Assembly: GCA_964247055.1 (NCBI GenBank)
Contig: OZ176055.1
Coordinates: 3,844,001 to 3,908,000 of the forward strand
From: Paragordius varius
Lineage: Eukaryota; Animalia; Nematomorpha
Length of the DNA: 64,000 bases
Direction: 5' to 3'
Below are positions 136-64,000 of this stretch, piece after piece. The notes under the pieces are model-generated. The model was not told where the DNA came from, made no database searches, and saw only the letters and a list, made by a program, of their open reading frames with translations. A program made the translations under genes and the position numbers. Numbering within the stretch: position 1 is the first letter of the stretch; every line of letters starts with the position of its first letter.

Positions 136-2515
136 ATTCAAACTTAAAATCTAAATTATCGAAGAATCACGGAGATTGGATTCAGGAAGTGGTTTTAGTA
201 GGAGGTTCTGTCAAAGTACCGCTTGTGTATGAGCGCATTAACCAATATTTTGAGAAAGCATGGCTACACTATAAGGATCTAGGTATTAATTGTATTATAT
301 TTAAAAAAAATTAAAAATACATTTATATGAATTTTTATAATAGAGAAACTAATAATGAATTTTATATGTTTCAATCAGAATTTCTCAATCATTCAAATCG
401 TAAATGTTTTAAAGTTATACAAAAGTTTTATTTTTTGTTAGCATATGATACATTTTAGAGCAGGGGTACTTAAACCGCGACCCTTGGGCCTCAAACGGCC
501 TTAAAAGTGTTTATTTATGGCTTTAAATTATTTAAATTATTTAACACACTCATTTAGATAATAATTATCTGCAAATTCAAGCAGGTATTAGATTTTTATC
601 AAATTATATGGTGCAAATTTTTGCGGCCCTTTCAAATGTTTTGCTAACATATCATAATTAGAAATTGTAAATATCGAAAACACAGGATATATAGCATATT
701 TATTTTATTATATTACTAGCGTAAATCTCGTGCTGCTACGCAGCACGAGAAAGTGCTTCGGACTTCTGGGGGGGGGGGGGGGGGTTTCGAAGTTTGGCTT
801 TGAATGGGTCTACCGGTTTTCCGGTACCACATCAAAAAGTTACATGAGGAATCAGTTTTTAGCGGGTAGATCCTTACCCAGCAGCTATCATCAAAAAAAC
901 GACTGACTTTAACAGGGAATACGTGGAATCCATATTGAATTTTTACGGTCTCATACCTAGGGTGAAAAATAGATTTAAAAAATTATTTTTGTGGACTTTG
1001 TTTTTTTTTGAAAAAATGGCATTTTACGGGGGGAGCGGGTAAAAAGAGGTCCTAAATCAAAAAAGTGAGACGACTATGTTCGGCGCGATCAAAGATAGGT
1101 AAACAAAAATCATATTTGAAATTGAATGGTCCTACACGTTCTCCAAAAAATTGACTTAACCCATTTTTCACACGGGGTAGGACCGAACTGGGGACCTAAT
1201 TCCAAACAGGGGGCGAAGCTATTGTCGGGGCATTCATTAATGATTAAATTTTTTCGATATTTGGATTTGATTGGGTTCACCGATTTTCCGGAGACAGATC
1301 ACAAAGTTACATGAGGAATCAGTTTTTAGCGGGTAGCTCCTTACCCAGCAGCTATCATCAAAGGAAGGCCTGACTAAAATTTTTGCCTTTTAACAGGGAA
1401 TACGTGGAATCCATATTGAAATTTTACGGTCTCATACCTAGGGCGAAAAATAGATTTAAAAAATTATTTTTGTGGACTTTTTTTTGAAAAAAATGGCATT
1501 TTACGGGGGGAGCGGGTAAAAAGAGGGCTTAAATTAAAAAAGTGACCCGACTATGTTCGGCGCAATCGAAAATAAGTAAATAAAAATCATATTTGAAATA
1601 GAATGGACCAACACGTTCTCCATAAAATTGTCTCAAAGACACGATTTTTGTGGACTTCTCTTTTCAAAAAAACCGTTTTTCACACGGGGTGGGCCCGAAC
1701 TGGGGGCCTATTTCAAAAAAGGGCGAAGCTATTGTCGGGGCATTCATTAATGATTATATTTTTTCGAAGTTTGGATTTGAATGGGTCTACCCGTTTTCCT
1801 GTACCAGATGACAAAGCCAGCATTTTCCTAAAAATATATAGATTAACAATGATTTACAATTGATCATAACGACCTTTTGTTAACACTAATTGACATAGCG
1901 TTCTTTGATTGTTTTGTAATGATGTGATTTAAGAATAGAGTCTTTTTAAAAAAATTATAAAATTTCGAAATCTCCTTTTAGTCCATTAATCAATCCTATA
2001 ATGGCTTCATAAAAAGGTATTAGCTCATCACCTCTGATTTCTACAAATCGAATCATATAAATGTTTATAAGTAATCACATACATATATTGTCGTTTATAT
2101 TATTGTACCAATTCAGATTCCCTTTTATAATGTAATTATATTTTAAAAATTAACATACGTTTACCCCATTATATATATTTAATTATATGTTCAAGATAAT
2201 AAAACACAACAAACCATTGAAAATGATTGGACCTATGAAGATTACAATAATAATGAGCATAATGAAGAAATAATGAATAATTCCAATACTCAACAAGCTC
2301 ATCCTTTGCACCAAACTCACATAAATTTACCGAAAGATCCTGAATTAGCGGTTTCAAAGGGCGTTTCTGTCATGGCTGGAATCTTGGGTGGGGCTTGGCC
2401 CTTGTCTGTTAGTGCGACAGAACCTTACCCTCGAAGGAACAAAAAACATCAAAATATTGACCATCTCCCTAAAATAAATAACAATATCAGAAGGTTAAAC
2501 TCGTCGGAACTGTAA
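136..2515 (+). CDS. HSPA13: Hsp70-family protein HSPA13/STCH, last two exons (136-282, 2196-2515); 5' part not resolved or outside window
   Basis: Exon 136-282 encodes IQEVVLVGGSVKVPLVYERINQYFEK (Hsp70 ATPase VLVGG motif). A phase-1 splice to 2196 gives DPELAVSKGVSVMAGILGGAWPLSVSATE, matching the recalled STCH C-terminus (DPDLAV..GVAIQAGI.GGSWPLQVSALE). No substrate-binding domain follows, as in STCH. Confidence 0.8.
716..1842 (-). mobile_element. Non-autonomous Helitron with internal ~470-510 bp tandem duplication
   Basis: Minus strand starts TCTATATATTTTTAGGAAAATGCTGG at 1842 and ends in an 11-bp hairpin (TCTCGTGCTGC-gta-GCAGCACGAGA) followed by TTTACG-CTAG at 716. Inserted between A and T. 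Unit restarts at ~796, ~1263, ~1773. Lies in the HSPA13 intron. Confidence 0.85.
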
Positions 2516-31297: not shown

Positions 31298-34200
31298 TTA
31301 GGAGCTTATCATGACCCTATACCAGGTGCCGATGTAGATTTATCACTACAAACCTTTACCTGCATACCAAACTTACAATCACCGTATAGCATTATGAACC
31401 CTAACGTCACGGATCGCAAAAAATACAACAAAATGGAGTGGTCGGATTGCACTGTTTTTTATATCCAATATAATTTGAAGTATATTTATGATTAAACTGG
31501 GTGAGATTCGTTATTGGCCCAAGTTATGAATTCAAGTCATTTTACCTTTTGGGTACACAAATGGGTTTTTTCGTTAAATATTGCTAAAACTGGTTCCGGT
31601 TCCATTATTTTTCGTCAGATTAGAATGAGTTTCGTTTATTATTCATAATTTACAACAGAAAGGTTATAATGCAATATGCCTTTTTTCCCAAATTAAATTT
31701 AAAAATTAATGGAATTAAGTTTTGGTAATTTATGTAGTAAAATATATATCACAAAACAATTTTTTGAAAACAGTCTTTGGCCATTTATTACCTTAAATGA
31801 TTGCAAAAAAGTTAATGATTTGGTCATAAAATTCTGTTTTAAACTAGATAAAATTAATTATATTCTTACACCAATTACGGTGATTGTATAATACTAGACA
31901 TATTTAACACTTGGGTACACATTCATTTCAGTCCTTCAATTCAAATTGAGGTAGATAGGCTTGAATATTTCAAAAAATATGGAAGGAGTTAAAACGATGG
32001 CAAAAGTTTGCTCTTATATAACATTGATAAAGCTAAATATAAAAAAATTATTTAAAAATACTTGATACTTTTTCCGAGGTAAATCTTAAGGTAATTTAGC
32101 CAGCATGACATGTGTGCATAAGCTAAAATGCAAAATAACCACTATTTCTGTTTATATCAATGTTAAATAGGATGTTATTAAAAAAAGAAAACTTGAATAA
32201 GGGCTAGAATCAAATAAACACGATAATTTGCAAAAATTTTATAAAAATGGTTTCAAGTAGTTGATACGAAACTTTTTTTTTAAAACTAAATTTTATTTAA
32301 TGTTTTAGCTTATTTATATAATTTGTATTATAGCATAAATTTAAATTGGAACCGTTTCTTTCAGTGGTTTTTTAAAAATATTAACTTAAATATTGTCTGG
32401 GATATTAATATCAGTTGGGTATAATTTATTATAACACAATAATGGGAAAACACAGTAATGCAATGGACTTAAAAAAGTTGTTGTTTATATAGGTTATATT
32501 TAATTCCGAAAAATGTATACGGATCTTATTATATATTTTTATCGTGCATTATATACAAATTTCTGAGAATGATGAGTGTGCATTTATAAAACTTGTCACG
32601 TAGTATATAACATGTCACGTAAAATATTATTAACAGAAAAGTATTATAAGTATGCATTGAATAGCAAAGTAATATATAAAATAGAGTTATGTTTTGTTGC
32701 ATATTATATAACATCATATCATATCTCCCACCTTTAATAAGAAAGACGATCCGGAGCTTTTCGTTCCCGACGAGGATAACGGCATTGTACTTCTGTCAAG
32801 TTACACTCCGACTCCACAGCTTCCGTAACTGGGATCTCTGGTACAATGTCAAGGGCGGGTTGTGACATAACAGACTTCTGTAGCTGATCGGCGTGTTTTC
32901 GCTGAATTTTCCTACCGTCATCAGTCTTGTAAGATAATAATCCTGTTCTTTCAATTACTTTTCCTTTCTGCCACCCCTCTGCTGTTTCATTTTTAATCAG
33001 AATAGCATAATCAACGTCAAATTCTCGTAAGGGGGCTCTAGTATTATCCATAAAATCTGATGGTATTGTCTTTAACCATGACAAGGGACCTAACAATTCT
33101 CTTTTTAGGAATAATGAGCATGGTGTTGCTCTCGTTGCACTATGAATTGTTTGCCGATAGCTCCACAAAATGGTATTCATTGCTTCTTGCGGAGAGATGT
33201 CAGCCCTCTTCGTAGCTTTATATTTAGTTTTCAATGTGTAAATAGATCTTTCAACCAACCCATTCGTTCGTGGGTGATACGGACTCGACGTAACATGTTT
33301 GATGTTTAAGTGTTTAAGCCTTTCATCAAAATCGTGCGATACAAAATAAGATGCATTATCACTTACTATTATAGGAAAACCATATCTCGCAAACAATTGT
33401 TCTAAAGAATTTAAAACAGACCTGCTCGTAACTTGTTTCAATATATTAACTTCCAGCCATTTGGACGAGCTGTCAATTGTTACCAGCCAGTAGAAATTAT
33501 CAATGGGACCAGCAATATCTATGTGTATTCTTTCCCAGACGGCGGTGTTGAAATTCCATTTGTATGTTGGGTTTTCCTGGACATTGGGCTTGTATCTTTG
33601 ACATGAGTCACATGTCTTCGCAAGCAATTCAATACTTTGGTCCAAGTGTGGCCAATATACACTGTGGCGCGCAAGGGACTTCATGGTACTTATCCCTGGG
33701 TGTCCAGTGTGAAAGTAGTTTAGGACTTCATTTTGCATGGATCTAAGAACAATGAGTCTATCCTCCAAATAAACTAAACCATACGATGCTTGGATAGCGT
33801 TGCGATGTGATTGATAATTTTTTAGATCTGGATCATCCCAATTGTTGGAATTTAATGCAATTTTTAATTTTTTTATCACCGGGTCCTTATTGGATTGAAC
33901 TAATACATTTTTTTATTAATGTTCAAATCGTTCATAGATAAGAACCGAATTTTTTCAGCTACATCATGATCATCATCCATTTCAGGATCGTCAATTGCTA
34001 ATCTTGATAGGGGATCAGCTAAATTTTGAACCCCTTTATTGAAATGAATGGTATAATCATACCCCGATATTTTATAAATCCAACGTAATGATTTTATATT
34101 AGTGACTCCGGTTAAGTTCCGGTCTTCCCCAAATAATTTAATCAGTGGTTTATGATCAGTAAATATTTTAAAAGATCTCCCATATATGAAAGGGTGAAAT

Positions 34201-37200
34201 TTGTTTACCGCGAACAAAATCGCCTTGGCCTCTCTTTCGATCGTCGAATAATGTTTTTCAGAATTTAAACATTTCCTGGATGCGAAAGAGATTGGCCGCT
34301 TGCCATCTTCGGTTACATGGAAAAGGATGGCACCCAAACCTTCGTTTGGAGCATCGGTCTCAATCAATAATGGCAATTGCGGATTGTACGGAATCAGTTC
34401 CGCAAAATTTGCTATTAGTTGTTTTGACAGTGCAAATTGTTTATCATGAATATTCTCCCATTTCCATGGCATTTTGTTTCCAGTTAAAGTGTGCAGATCA
34501 CTTATGACTGAATGTAATCTTGGAATAAATTTTTCATGAAAGTTCAATAGTCCTAAAAAGAACGTATGTTGTTTTGTCCTTTGGAACAGGACATTTCTAA
34601 ATAGCCTTGATTTTTTCATCCGTTGGCTTAATACCTCTTTTAGATATTTCGTATCCCATGTAGGATACTTTTTCCTGGAAGAATTTCATTTTATCCGGTT
34701 GCAAACGGAATCCGGCCTGTTCAAGTTTCTCCAACACATGCTCAAGATTTGCTTTGTGTTGAGTGTCTGTATTGCCGGTTACCAGAACATCATCCAGATA
34801 AGCACAAACGCCTGTGCAATCATCCAGAATTTAATCCATAACTCGTTGAAATATCATTGGAGCATTTGTGAGCCCGAAAGGTAATCGTTTATACGTAAAG
34901 TAACCTCTGTGTGTTGTAATTGCAGAATATTAGAGCATTCTTTATCAACCGGTAGTTGTAAGTAGGCATCCTTGAGATCCAAAACTGAAAATGAATGTCC
35001 ATTTCCGATTTTACCCAATAATTGATCAAATGTCGGAATGATATGAGAATCTTTTGATAGATAAGGATTGATTGTGACACGAAAATCGGCGCAAATACGA
35101 GCCTCCCCATTGGATTTTAACACGTTGACCGTTGGGGTTGCCCAAGATATCTCAGTTGTTGTTGGGTCTATTGGTTCTATAATCCCCAAATCTAACAATC
35201 TATTCAATTAATTTTCTACCAATGGTTGCAATGGTAGAGGAACTCTACGGCATGGAAAAGCTTTTGGTTTTGCATCCGTTGTCAAAAAAATTTTGATCGG
35301 ATTGCCGTTGTAACAACCAAGTTCCTTTGAGAATAGTTTTGGAAATATTTTGGTCAGCTCCATCTTCTCATTAGAATTTATATTATTGATTACACCTTTT
35401 GGAAAAGGTAGCTTGTACGCTTTTATCCAATCAAAATTGCTTTTAGTTACGATACATGGTAACGTTTTCTTTTCATTGTACAACGTCACAGTGACCATAG
35501 TTTTCCCTAAGATTGTTATCTTATTATTATCATACCTGGTTATTTGATCGGACCACGTTAACTTAGGGCTACCGATCTGCTTCCATATTTGTTGACTTAT
35601 GAGACAGCAGTCAGCACCGGTATCGAAAATCATATCTATCATATTATTGTTTCACTTTTATTTTAGGGGTAGTGCCCGCTTTTATAGATCTAATTTGATC
35701 TAAATTTCTCACCAACTTTGTTTTGCACATTGAACTAAAGTGGTTATTTTTGTTGCAATTGTAGCACGTTTTGCCCCAAGCCGGACACTTGTTTCTCACA
35801 TGCAGTAATCCAGAATTTCGGCAATTTACTTTAGTATCATTAATATCCCGGACATCATTATTCTTATTGTTTTTATAATTATTATTGTTATAATGGCCCT
35901 TGTTAAAACTTCCATGAGGTTTCAAATTTCTGGATCTATCCACTTTAAACTTATTGATTTGCGAGGGAAGATTATCGGCTTCCTCAAAACTTAAAGCCAT
36001 ATCGACCAACATTTGTAGTGTCAGTGGTTTGTCATCTAACTTACCGAGCGGATATTTTATGTGGAGTTCTCTTTCTAATCTGGGTTGATTTAATCCAATC
36101 AAAAATATATCCCTGATTTTGTTAGAAATGTCCGAATCAAATCCAGAGTTGTCGGCCAAAATTTTCAAACGTTCTAAATACGAAAGAATAGACTCATTAT
36201 CACCACGACGAATACGATAAAATGCACATCTAATCACCCATAGACTTTTGTCTGGGGCATAGATTTGAACTGCAATTTTATAGATTTCCGGCCATTCCAA
36301 ATCTTCGATGGTATCAGGATATAGAATATTTTCAATTTTATTCAAAATTTTAATACCACCGAAAGCTAAAAATAATTTTTTTATATTGGAATCCGTGACA
36401 GGAATATCCCTGGCCGCGAGTACCCTTTCTATGTGCTTGACATAATTTTTGAAATTGTAACATTCGTCAAATGGTTCAAGAATTATTCGATTTAGAGGAT
36501 TTTGTGCATTACTAAATGATGTATCTCCGGGATTTTCCATTAGGCAGAATAAATTTTTTTCTCGTCGCCAAATAATATCAGTTGGGTATAATTTATTATA
36601 ACACAATAATGGTAAAACACAGTAATGCAATGGACTTAAAGAAGTTGTTGTTTATATAGGTTATATTTAATTCCTAGAAATGTATACGGATCTTATTATA
36701 TATTTTTATCGTGCATTAACATATACAAATTTCTGAGAATGATGAGTGTGCATTTATAAAACTTGTCACGTAGTATATAACATGTCACGTAAAATATTAA
36801 TAACAGAAAAGTATTATAAGTATGCATTGAATAGCAAAGTAATATATAAAATAGAGTTATGTTTTGTTGCATATTATATAACATCATATCAGATATGTAG
36901 ATACCCCAATTTGAATCTAAGTGTTAAATATATATTTTAATCATTACAAACTTTCCGTAATTTTAATAAAATTTCTTTTAAAACATGTAGTTTAAATGGG
37001 GCATGTTTGATGAAATCTATTCCACTTTTTACACCAACCCCGCCTACCGCAAATTATATGTATTATTATGCACCAAATCAAATGTGCAAAACTTACCATG
37101 GGAAGGGTTATTTAGCAGATTTTGCGAAGGTAAACTTTTCTATAAGTTGTTTAATTACTCTTTTCTTTCAATATAGTTTTAATAACTAAATAATTTTAAG

Positions 37201-58490: not shown

Positions 58491-59064
58491 GAAGATTTGC
58501 ACATATTATTTAGTATGTAAAATTCCTGAAATTTTCAGTTTAATTTTGGTTATCATTATTTCAGGATTTAACATCTCTTATTTGTCTTGTTTTTACTTTT
58601 TCTATATTTATATTTATAATGTTAATTTCGATTACAAATAGATTATTTATATACTATAATAAAATTAATTGTTTTTTTGCAGAATACATTTATAAAAAAG
58701 GAATAATCCATAAAAAATGAAATATGTTTTAATTATAAGTGTCCATCTAAGATATCGCTAATGATTAAACTATAAATACTCAACTACTTGCAATCATCAC
58801 AAGTCTGTATAATTTCCATAGAAAGATTTTGTTAAAAATGAAAGGGCCAATATTTACAAAGTCTCATTTTAAATTATGAAAATTAACTTGTTCTGCAACT
58901 GTTTCAACAGTAGCATATTTAATATATGTAATTTTTTATACTTTATTATGATTGTTTGAAAAATGCGAATGGTATTCTTGAAACAGTAAATAATCTCTAA
59001 CACAGTATTAAAAAAATTCATGATGTTGTTGTTTAACAATTAGTTTTGATGATGCACTACCTTA

Positions 59065-59600
59065 AACCCAGCTTTTTATGAAATAGTTCTTTATCAATAC
59101 ATCTGTTTTTAGCAGTAGTTGTTGGAAATCCAGATCAATGTTTTTAGCCCATAAACGAGGACTACCGGGTTTATTGTTTCCGGGTGGAATGATGTCGAAT
59201 GAGGTTCTGATTGGATTATCAGGATTCATACAGTCTAGGTGACCGTAGTATCTCATTCTTTTGAATTGGATGAAATTGTCTATTGAGTCCATTTGTATGT
59301 GATTGCGGAAATCTTGGGGATTTAGTTGCGTTGACAGGCGTAGCATGTAATTTTAAGCGCTGATGAAACGTTTTTCTGTTTGTGTTAATACCATGGTTTC
59401 TATGGCATATGTCAAAACTGGTCTCACACCCATTTTATAAATTAAGTTTGTGTATAATGTATTTTAGCTATTGGTATTTTTCCCATGTACGATTTATTCT
59501 GGCATTAAATGCGCTATTGTTTGAGGAATCTGATGTTTTGTCACAAAGATAGGTAAATTCGTTTACAACTTCAAAGCTTGATTTATTAAGGGCGATGCAT
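59065..59600 (-). mobile_element. Degraded RTE-like LINE ORF2 3' fragment
   Basis: EVVNEFTYL, IYKMGVRPVLTYAIETM, KRMRYYGHL and GNNKPGSPRLW, interrupted by stops and frameshifts. Confidence 0.7.
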
Positions 59601-61097
59601 TAATTGGTAAAAGCGTTGCATGATGCCCGCATGAGTCGCATTTAAAATTATACGGAGAGTTTGCCGGTAATGTTTGTACATTTGTGGCACCATTTTTGCA
59701 AAGCAGAAAATATAATTAAATTTAACATATAACCCGTAATCTCCGCATGGGTATTTAATTTTATTGTGGGGTTCGCCCGTTATCAGAATTTTTCTTTTAT
59801 TTTCATTTATTTTGAATTCAAATTTGGTTAGCTGTTGTTACCAATATATATATATATATATATATTATGACAAGAAAATGTATCCGGATTATCATGGTGC
59901 TTTGGGTTTCGATCGTTATGAGTGATTTGAGAAATTTTCGGGTTATATTATAAGTGTTTTCTTAAATTGATTTTTATCGAACTGTTTTAACTATATATCC
60001 AAATAACCTTCTTCTTTCGGATCTATCACGATTTTGAACAACTATTATGTAATTTTATCATTTGCGCTTCAATAGTGTCATTAAACACTTCAAGCTAATC
60101 CTTTAACACTTCGAATTGGTATTTATTTTTGATGTATATAACCGTAAATGTAACATTTTTTATTTTACCCTAATATCTTTATTTATAAGTATTTTATTAT
60201 TTAAAATTAACCATTTTTTATTTAAAATAACTTCTTTTGTTTCGAATTTTTTCCAATTCAACAATATTATTTGGAAAAAATTAAATTATATCGATATTAA
60301 ACTACACGGTTTTTATATGCAAAAAAGAATAATTAAATAAAAATTATGATAAATAATATTAGGTTCAATTATAAAATAGATGAATTATACTAGGTTTGAT
60401 TTATGGCAAAAATTTCAAAAACCAAATTAAAATGTTAAAAAACCAACATGAAATGTTTAAGAGCCGAAACGTAGAAGGACTAACTTGTGTTTCAGGACAC
60501 TCGTAAAGTACAAATGGCATATAATTTTTAATATAGTAGTATATGTTATTTTTTCTATATATAAATATAAAAATGAATGATAATGTGGTATATGCCTGTA
60601 TTATTTTGCGGTACACTACACTTTCTAACAAACATAAAAAAAATATATTTTACCTAAATAATATCATCTAACAAATATATATATAAATTTAACAACGATA
60701 TAAACATTTTCCAGAAGTGAAAACTTAGCTAAATTTAAATACCATTCTATGAAAAATAGCATTCCTAAAAACGAGTTTATAAATTATTTATGCATGTTAT
60801 TCCTTTTATTGCCAAACATATACTGGTTCAAAAATAGACAATTTTTGTTCATTCTAGGGTATATATTTTTTAATGTGGGATGGAATAGAGTATTTTCACG
60901 CAAATAAATCATTGTAATTCTTGACCAAAAGTTAAAATACTCTAATTAGTATAAAAAACAATTTTATAAATCTTAGTAATCTATTAAATGTATTCTTTTA
61001 AAAATGAAAAATTTCTAATATCAAAACCAATTATAACAGCAAATTTCAAATCAAATTTATTAGTAATATAATTCGGCAAAACGGATGCATATTTTTA

Positions 61098-61381
61098 TCA
61101 ACTTTCATTTCGTGGAAGAGAACGTTTAAATAATAATATATGTGGTTCTATATGTTAAATTAAATGTACCTGGTAAATGTATCATATAATGAATCCAACC
61201 TGGTGATTGTTGAATTCCCATATTACGCCATTCTGTTTCGGTCATAAGATGATTTCGTGGTACTAACTTTGCTAGCTCTTCTGGTAATGTTACATGCCTT
61301 ATTTAAGAATAAACGTACAAACCTGTATTCGAAATTATCATCGGCATATTTCTCAGAGTAGGAAATCTGTACTTCTAACAT
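61098..61381 (-). CDS. CKS1: Cyclin-dependent kinase regulatory subunit Cks1; exons 61381-61323, 61297-61170, 61147-61098 (78 aa); missed by the ORF track
   Basis: Spliced product [78 protein letters not shown] aligns without gaps to recalled human CKS1. Confidence 0.95.
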
Positions 61382-62057
61382 TTAAATAATTAAAATATGT
61401 GCCACATGATATAAAGGCTGAACACTCTGGCATGCTTTTTAACCGTCGGCCGTATTCAAGTTGATAGTTTATAAATGGTAAAATATATTTTAACTTTTAG
61501 CCAAAACGTAAAACTGATCAAGTTTTAGTGGGAAAACCGCATCATGTTGCAACTCGACAAATATCACGTAAAACATTTCATTCAGGTTATAGATATTTTT
61601 CTTTCATAGTTTTAAATTTTTTTTTAACATTTTTTTAGGTAGTTTCAAAATTCCGTTAGGCCTTTAATATATAATTGTCTACATAAATTAGATGAGAATT
61701 TTATCATTCCAACCTCTTAAATATCCCAAAAAATTATAAAAGCATAACATCAATTAATATATATCGCCAAATTAACAATATAAAATCCTCCATAGAAATG
61801 GTTTAGCTATATTTTTTAATACCACATAATGTACAAATGCAAAATAATAGACCAGTAGTGCACATCAAAATATTTAAAGCTCCTTCACCATATAATATCG
61901 ATTATATCATAGCTGCTTGACTTATTTGCAGATATTTTTACTCAAAATAAACATCAAAAACTTAAAAAATAATTTAGGGCTATAAAAAAGTAATTTTGGG
62001 GGATGCGGGGTTTTTAATACCACTGGTATAGAGAATAAAATTACCCTTTTGAAATAG

Positions 62058-63182
62058 AAAATTTACCAAAAGAAATCCAAAATACTTCCAAGCCAAAATC
62101 TATTGCTGGTCGAAAAAGAAAAACCACAACAACGGCTCAATTGGATCTCACAAACATGAATCATATTGAACAACCAAGTTTTACATCATCTCACGTATTA
62201 TGTTTGGGTGAAGGGGACGCTGGACAATTAGGGTTAGGCGAAGATATTTTATCTACACGGTTCCCTAAATTATTACCTCTGTTTCAGCAAGAAGTATCGA
62301 ATATTAAAGATCCAATATGTCAAATTAGTGCAGGAGGCATGCATTCTGTCTGTTGTTCGCGAGATAATAAAGTAAGTATTTCTGGTTTGAGTAAAAAAAG
62401 GTTATTATTCAACCATTATAATTTTAATTTTCTAACCTTTCACTCTAAATAAATATCAAGACAAAGCGTAAAAACGAAATGACAAATATTCTTTTATTAA
62501 GTAAACTATACTCTTAATTTTTCTATGTATCTTCTTTTGTGATACATAATATATCGAAATACCAATTTACATCGTCATTTTCTATTTTGCTAATATATAT
62601 GATAAGTTACAACTAAAAAATTAGGGTTTAAAAATATGGTTGTCTTTTTTAAAAGGTGCCCCTTTTAATTGTTACGTTTAGTGTTTAAAGTTTAATTTAC
62701 AGTATTAAATTTTGGGTTTATTTTATTAGAGAAATATTTGTTCTAAAATGCAATGTATGTGTTTTAAGCAAATTTTTTTAAATTAGGTAGGTAGGTTGCT
62801 AGTTAGCCAAGCAGGTTGGATTTTTATGCGATCGTTTTATTGTCTGTATAAAATTCAATGTGATGTCCAATAATATTTTATACTGTATAATTTGAATATT
62901 TGGTTGTAATTATAGTTCAAAATCCACTAATTTTTGTCAATATTTTATACATATGTAATGTAAAATTTAAAAAATATTTTATTACACTTTTAGATTTACA
63001 CATTCGGTTGTAATGATGATGGTGCGTTAGGCCGTATTTGTGAGGATGATTCAGATGAAAAAATACCTCAATCAGTTGCTTTCGATTTCGAAGGCGGTCA
63101 AATTTTGCAAATTACAACAGGAGATTCGCACACAGCTGTTCTTACAAAACAAGGCATGGTGTTTGGTTGGGGATCATTTAGG
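62058..63182 (+). CDS. RCC1: Regulator of chromosome condensation 1, 5' exons (62058-62371, 62994-63182); start exon uncertain, gene continues downstream
   Basis: VLCLGEGDAGQLGLGED..QISAGGMHSVC | IYTFGCNDDGALGR..QITTGDSHTAVLT..VFGWGSFR matches RCC1 repeats 1-2; the N-tail carries basic GRKRK. Confidence 0.9.
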
Positions 63183-64000
63183 GTTTTTTAATGTTATATA
63201 TTGCGTTTTGAAATTTGGTTGTCTTTATAGTTATTTTGGGTTTTTGAAATCAAATATACCTTGGTCGAAAATTAAAATACTGGTCTGACTACTTATAAAT
63301 GTCCTTTATTATTACAAACGTAAAAAGTATAATAAATTACTACTAAACCAAACAAAATAGGATTTGTGTTTTAGCATATCTTTAAATTATTTAATTCATT
63401 CTTAAAGTTATGAATTCTCATTTATTCGGAATTATTGCGATATCAACTATTCTTTTAATCGGATTTTGTTGCTGTTTCATATTTTTGGTATGAAATGGTT
63501 CTATTTTTGTTTTAACTTTAAATTTATAGTGATGATAAATATTTGAATACAGTCTATAATATAAAATGGTTCAAAGTTAGGAGAAAATCATTTTATTTTC
63601 CTTTGTATAACTGGGAAGACCCGTGGTTTCCTAATAGCTGACAGTACTCGTTTAATTCTATGGGAATATTGTTTGTGTTAGTTTAAATGCCAACATTTTT
63701 ATGTTTATTACATTTAGCAACATAATATGTGTTTAAATTTACATAATTATTTCATTATAACCCTTTTTTGGCAACTTTGGTTTTTATTATGAGGACAATT
63801 TTATAACCATAATTGTATTATATTATAAAACTGTAAAAAATTTACGAACCCAATATGAAAACTCTTTATTTCACACTTTTAGTTCGTTACCGAAATTAAA
63901 AGATTTATTGTTAAAAAACATTAATTTGATTAAGGTTATTTTTATAATAGCCAAATTTCTTTTTTTTTCTGATAGCTTTTTTGCACATTTATGTTGATCA

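Follow-up and report, generated by a model that had tools for sequence, protein, structure and literature searches.

Is a coding sequence that opens only when two segments of 25 and 22 nt are taken out of it a working gene with extremely short introns, or a locus that only resembles one? This question is raised by the minus strand of the 64,000-nt stretch of hairworm DNA analysed here (the window, C6:3844001-3908000), which belongs to a genome assembly of 110.5 Mb in 44 contigs with about 27% G+C. We conclude that the locus is very probably a functional CKS/Suc1 gene of a gordiid hairworm, predicted to encode a CDK regulatory subunit, whose ancestral introns appear to have shrunk to these sizes.

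The CKS gene and its two short segments

A three-exon CKS/Suc1 gene occupies 61098-61381 on the minus strand (Table 1). Removal of the two GT-AG segments of 25 and 22 nt yields a stop-free CKS protein of 78 residues, whereas no such protein is obtained without it. This agrees in coordinates and sequences with the preliminary description of this DNA, according to which an ungapped Cks1 protein requires the loss of 61322-61298 and 61169-61148. The junctions had been given there as EYR/H and HxP/E; these sites stand, but they do not lie between codons, as intron 1 interrupts the Arg20 codon in phase 2 (AG/G) and intron 2 the Glu63 codon of the HxPEPH hinge in phase 1 (G/AA). Both codons arise only through intron removal. 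In the spliced translation, an alignment finds Lys11, Arg20, Ser51, Trp54 and Arg71 (human CKS1 numbering), which form the anion-binding pocket of human CKS1, as well as the HxPEPH hinge.

The ATG (61381-61379) directly follows an in-frame TAA, and exon 1 matches positions 1-20 of the Pfam CKS profile. Exon 2 alone reaches 71.7 bits against this profile (PF01111; 5.6e-20, profile positions 16-56), the curated cut-off of which is 27 bits, and aligns without gaps with residues 21-62 of the human CKS1 chain 1buh_B (E about 1e-18); in the truncated human CKS1 chain 2ass_C, the gapless match covers residues 17-58. These profile and structure searches were run exon by exon, while the joined translation was used for local alignment and substitution counts. 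Upon translation, either intron, if kept, leads to a premature stop: with both introns in place the frame stops after 52 residues, and with only intron 1 removed it stops after 76 residues and lacks the C-terminal strand. An AATAAA downstream of the stop is a possible polyadenylation signal, although such a motif says little in DNA so rich in A and T.

The choice of these two segments is not arbitrary. The 284-nt CKS span contains 44 GT..AG segments of 15-80 nt, and 34 of the 573 possible removals of zero, one or two of them keep the frame open. Among these alternatives, the proposed pair obtains the top score against the Gordionus protein (374, with the runner-up at 338), and it alone brings both junctions to the sites of the orthologues. 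A search of the protein collection found none identical to the CKS product.

Table 1. Positions of the features discussed; numbers without a prefix are window positions
Feature	Position	Strand	Details
CKS exon 1	61323..61381	-	59 nt; 19 residues and first two bases of the Arg20 codon
CKS intron 1	61298..61322	-	25 nt, GT..AG, phase 2, 24% G+C
CKS exon 2	61170..61297	-	128 nt; encodes HVTLPEEL...HYMIHLP
CKS intron 2	61148..61169	-	22 nt, GT..AG, phase 1, 18% G+C
CKS exon 3, coding part	61098..61147	-	completes Glu63, then 15 residues; TGA stop 61100-61098
AATAAA, possible polyadenylation signal	61056..61061	-	36 nt past the CKS stop
RCC1-like gene intron	62372..62993	+	622 nt, ordinary GT-AG; flanking exons match RCC1 repeats
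CKS paralogue	C1:10468127-10468405 (L002:1434-1712)	+	77 residues, 61% identical
CKS paralogue introns	L002:1490-1511, 1640-1662	+	22 nt and 23 nt, GT-AG, at both sites of the window CKS
Gordionus sp. CKS gene	GCA_954871325.2, L006:3001-3328		exons 59 + 128 nt, introns 40 + 42 nt
XPD/ERCC2	C6:3913349-3922265 (L017:1431-1761, L042)	-	about 14 kb beyond the window
LINE-type reverse-transcriptase ORF, remnant in XPD intron 5	L042:6983-7720	same as XPD	
WDR3 intron	L018:1923-1945, C6		23 nt; its removal brings Pfam profile positions 90 and 92 together; about 14.5 kb before the window
WDR3 intron candidate	L018:1686-1706		21 nt; ends in in-frame TAG
PLK-like kinase tiny introns	L046:380-541		21 + 24 nt; protein-kinase profile sweep
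CHK1-like kinase tiny intron	L049:203-226		24 nt; protein-kinase profile sweep
CDK1-like kinase tiny introns	L047:205-336		29 + 25 nt; protein-kinase profile sweep
Another kinase, tiny intron	L052:332-353		22 nt; protein-kinase profile sweep

Six public DNA sequencing runs under three organism labels contain the region 59000-64000 of the window, with sampled-word shares from 0.93 to 0.23; mislabelled hairworm data in Chordodes are reported in a 2026 preprint (10.64898/2026.02.03.703548). A DNA contig of run X6 extends across CKS intron 1, with 37 letters to one side of it and 89 to the other. Intron 2 is read through without a difference by contigs of runs X3 (61120-61330) and X6 (61044-61194), the shorter sides of which, at 28 and 25 letters, fall below our 31-letter rule. 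Run X3 shows zero differences over 61120-61330, as against 9 in the 184 nt just upstream. As contigs of other DNA runs retain both segments, these are real DNA, and an assembly error was rejected as their origin. In X7 and X9, two of five small runs that we guessed to be RNA, nothing matched over 59000-64000, and joints of 22 or 25 nt were not seen over this region among runs X7, X9, X3 and X6, the latter two being DNA. That both segments are cut out of RNA, where the branch point lies and how efficiently splicing proceeds are our inferences.

Intron positions in other animals and a second CKS copy

The best relative of the CKS product in the protein collection is a Gordionus sp. protein (P0001, 81 residues), with which it is identical at 68 of 78 residues and which, among the matches, is the only one to have its N- and C-terminal residues in common. 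The Gordionus gene likewise has three exons, the first two of them equal in length to those of the window gene, and its introns match both tiny introns in nucleotide position and phase. The annotation of the Gordionus gene records them as introns; at 40 and 42 nt they are within the normal animal range, unlike the 25 and 22 nt found here. The intron sequences cannot be aligned between the two species, and the 6.3-kb locus gave no match with Gordionus other than CKS itself. Between the two coding sequences, pN is 0.125 and pS 0.77, a saturated value, which gives a pN/pS of about 0.16. With silent sites saturated, Gordionus is therefore not a close relative of this worm. The window CKS is, judging by these substitution counts, under purifying selection.

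Both intron sites extend far beyond hairworms. The sea cucumber Apostichopus carries introns of 643 and 91 nt at the two sites and the hydroid Hydractinia introns of 6058 and 4606 nt, while CKS2 of the bird Sula has both junctions in common, with an intron of about 1070 nt at site 2. The nematode Ditylenchus has only site 1 in common (a 394-nt intron), and the CKS gene of the copepod Tigriopus is intronless. The proposal of the preliminary description that ancestral introns have shrunk is supported by the site and phase common to Gordionus, sea cucumber, hydroid and bird CKS2, and the vertebrate intron positions that it had named are indeed seen as both junctions of the bird gene. The comparison supports the view that both tiny CKS introns are ancestral metazoan introns in shrunken form.

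A second CKS copy lies on another contig and carries tiny introns at the same two sites, the sequences of which are unrelated to those in the window gene. Its exon 2 has 128 nt, as in the window CKS and in Gordionus, reaches 71 bits against the Pfam CKS profile and is most like vertebrate CKS2 (81% to a frog protein). A word search revealed no Gordionus counterpart of this paralogue. The dN/dS between the two paralogues is 0.23.

The vertebrate CKS1/CKS2 pair is a vertebrate duplication. No correspondence of the two hairworm copies to its members emerged; both intron sites are common to hairworm CKS and bird CKS2. The Pfam match upholds the assignment to the CKS family made in the preliminary description, but its name CKS1 can serve only as a loose family label, since the division into CKS1 and CKS2 known from vertebrates does not hold for the hairworm copies. 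With human CKS1 and CKS2 (PDB 1buh, 1cks) and yeast Suc1/Cks1, the hairworm protein has the exon 2 alignment, the anion pocket and HxPEPH in common.

Further tiny introns and possible signals for their removal

Tiny introns are also found in other genes. Together with those of CKS, seven genes yielded fifteen introns that are 21-29 nt long; for 11 of them an orthologue, a Pfam profile or the chain of a solved structure served as a check, and for the remaining four only reading and frame. In XPD/ERCC2, the first four introns measure 22, 23, 22 and 23 nt, so that the tiny ones cluster 5', and exons 2-5 align without gaps with residues 3-35, 36-61, 62-82 and 83-120 of human XPD chains. They are followed by intron 5 of 2975 nt, which contains a reverse-transcriptase ORF (RVT_1, 2.2e-28), and by intron 6 of 324 nt. 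The preliminary description had tiny introns coexisting with multi-kb introns laden with transposable elements (TEs), and this is true even inside one gene. As the same gene has 22-nt and 3-kb introns, one spliceosome would have to handle both extremes. The window itself harbours a Ty3/gypsy-type retrotransposon (32734-36630, minus strand) with integrase, RNase H and zinc-knuckle Gag in consecutive ORFs.

WDR3 contributes a 23-nt intron and a 21-nt candidate, for which the upstream exon gave no structure match. The RCC1-like gene, which starts 760 nt from CKS, has an intron of ordinary size. The spacing of the other exon pairs in the protein-kinase profile sweep, mostly 54-340 nt, shows that ordinary introns are common in this genome and suggests that the tiny ones form one class, not the bulk. 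The 29- and 34-nt introns named in the preliminary description were not located in the window.

A de novo census of tiny introns over 264 kb (the window and a further 200 kb), in which open frames were joined across GT..AG with and without a splice-motif filter, did no better for GT..AG than for the controls CT..AC and GA..TG. Codon usage, scored after training on 25 long ORFs, distinguished coding from non-coding DNA too weakly.

Lengths divisible by three were absent from the four tiny introns known to the preliminary description, but kinase genes do contain introns of 21, 24 and 24 nt, and the earlier absence reflects a small sample. All three of these introns contain in-frame stops. They were selected from profile matches in which one frame contains stops, and because this choice favours stop-bearing introns, no ratio can be derived from the kinase set. 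The nine tiny introns that we accept as real in CKS, XPD and WDR3 include no multiple of three, but the peak at 22-23 nt alone would leave few such lengths. Every tiny intron examined leads to a premature stop if retained, and the idea that lengths other than multiples of three keep retention visible to nonsense-mediated decay is compatible with the data. Jaillon et al. are said to have linked, in 2008, a deficit of stop-less introns with lengths divisible by three in Paramecium to this decay pathway.

When pooled, the fifteen tiny introns have a mean G+C of 16.5%. After GT, position +3 is A or T in all fifteen, T stands at +4 in 12 and at +6 in 11, and 4 of 15 end in AAG instead of the usual YAG. 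An A at -7 occurs in 11 of 15, before a T-rich stretch from -5 to -3, in a small sample from DNA with about 73% A+T. This A is the only recurrent internal signal; no UNAY motif was found at a fixed place in the tiny introns, and a clear branch-point consensus is not visible.

An inventory of U1, U2, U2AF and SF1, as suggested in the preliminary description, located all of these parts in the genome: a U1 snRNA (124 bits) with the canonical 5' end ACUUACCUG, a U2 snRNA (178 bits) with the canonical GUAGUA branch-site box, SF1 (SF1-HH, 74.9 bits) and a U2AF65-like gene with collinear U2AF large-subunit exon matches on contig C8. The U12 snRNA gave no match at E <= 0.001 genome-wide; the minor spliceosome may be absent, which such a search cannot establish. 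The U1 genes are clustered together with many decayed copies (C6:565331-633363), and U2 genes and fragments form a long array (C3:257436-527000) and smaller groups on C2 and C5.

An ordinary U2-type spliceosome would then remove both tiny CKS introns. U1 would pair with the reduced 5' site, GT[A/T]T..., and an adenosine that lies about 7 nt from the 3' end would act as the branch point, with a short run rich in T and then the AG behind it. The Arg20 codon and the Glu63 codon of the hinge would be assembled by splicing, and keeping either intron would cause a frameshift and a truncated protein.

Alternative readings and the meaning of ultra-short introns

The locus could also be an unexpressed CKS pseudogene, in which two short insertions begin with GT and end with AG by chance. 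Such a reading would account for the lack of any match at the locus in the two runs guessed to be RNA, and for the fact that an annotated protein for the window CKS was not found in the protein collection. But both insertions must then have hit exactly the sites that hold introns in hairworm, echinoderm, cnidarian and bird genes. The chance of this is roughly 1 in 28,000 even if the GT..AG ends are left out of the count, and the coincidence would be needed a second time in the paralogue. The exons are free of stops and frameshifts, the functional residues are kept, and the excess of pS over pN against Gordionus, even with silent sites saturated, argues that the locus is not a pseudogene. With two copies that both require removal of the segments and both evolve as proteins, we regard this explanation as highly improbable and, for practical purposes, as ruled out. 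Least probable in our view, and deserving hardly any weight, is that the segments belong to germline DNA and are eliminated at the DNA level, like ciliate IES, or are bypassed in translation. Nothing speaks for it directly, except that RNA splicing was unobserved. Against it stand the GT..AG ends, the fact that ordinary spliceosomal introns elsewhere among animals are homologous to them in site and phase, the annotation of the longer Gordionus versions as introns, the retention of the segments in contigs from further DNA runs that apparently sampled whole animals, and the canonical spliceosome parts in the genome. A ciliate or nucleomorph origin of the DNA was considered because the gene ends in TGA, the DNA is AT-rich and an intron measures only 25 nt; it was rejected in view of the hairworm orthologue, animal GPCRs, sparse gene spacing and long introns.

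It is unlikely, too, that the CKS introns are real but poorly spliced, so that most transcripts would retain them, be frame-shifted and be degraded, and their small size, far from neutral, would hold expression back. The premature stop caused by either retained intron would suit such a role, as would the in-frame stops in all tiny introns seen with lengths divisible by three, though the filter favoured these; for microsporidian short introns, a median splicing efficiency of about 25% is cited in PMC13644364. Strong purifying selection on CKS speaks against poor splicing. Moreover, both CKS copies and the housekeeping gene XPD keep several tiny introns, which argues for good enough removal. A functional CKS gene with shrunken introns that are efficiently enough removed is the reading we prefer.

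A study of 51 animal genomes (PMC13644364; Mol Biol Evol, Sept 2026) reports introns below 30 bp from two groups, the myxobolid myxozoans and Dicyema, and from no other, and it does not mention hairworms. The hairworm genome papers that we searched do not discuss introns. The resemblance to Dicyema japonicum and the myxobolids (Henneguya, Thelohanellus, Myxobolus) is close (PMC13644364): in these parasitic animals, too, the genome is AT-rich, and GT-AG introns, about 20-30 nt long, occupy conserved positions between conserved exons. Their 5' site is reduced (GTa), a few A residues shortly ahead of the 3' AG are all that resembles a branch-point signal, and a canonical U2 snRNA and U2AF are retained. 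Their median intron, however, is 22-27 nt long, whereas the hairworm belongs to another phylum, Nematomorpha, within Ecdysozoa, and has its tiny class beside introns of 54-340 nt and kilobase introns with TEs in a 110.5-Mb genome. Splicing in Dicyema and the myxobolids was checked with Iso-Seq (PMC13644364), while the hairworm introns are predicted from DNA. Paramecium (about 25 nt), Stentor (15-16 nt), nucleomorphs and microsporidia are similar in intron size and AT-richness, but ciliates, nucleomorphs and microsporidia are unicellular lineages with nearly uniform intron sizes.

We consider it probable that a gordiid lineage independently evolved a discrete class of 21-29-nt introns through the shrinkage of ancestral introns that in Gordionus still measure about 40 nt. 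The hairworm would be the third independent animal case of introns below 30 nt, and the first in Ecdysozoa. The occurrence of 22-nt introns beside a 3-kb LINE-bearing intron in XPD, in a TE-rich genome of 110 Mb, would mean, if true, that intron miniaturisation is uncoupled from genome compaction. The minimal requirements of animal splicing would become testable within one organism. Annotation pipelines that by default accept no intron shorter than about 30-40 nt would break or miss genes like CKS, and, if our reading is true, a part of the 'gene loss' and of the low BUSCO scores of Nematomorpha would be an annotation artefact.
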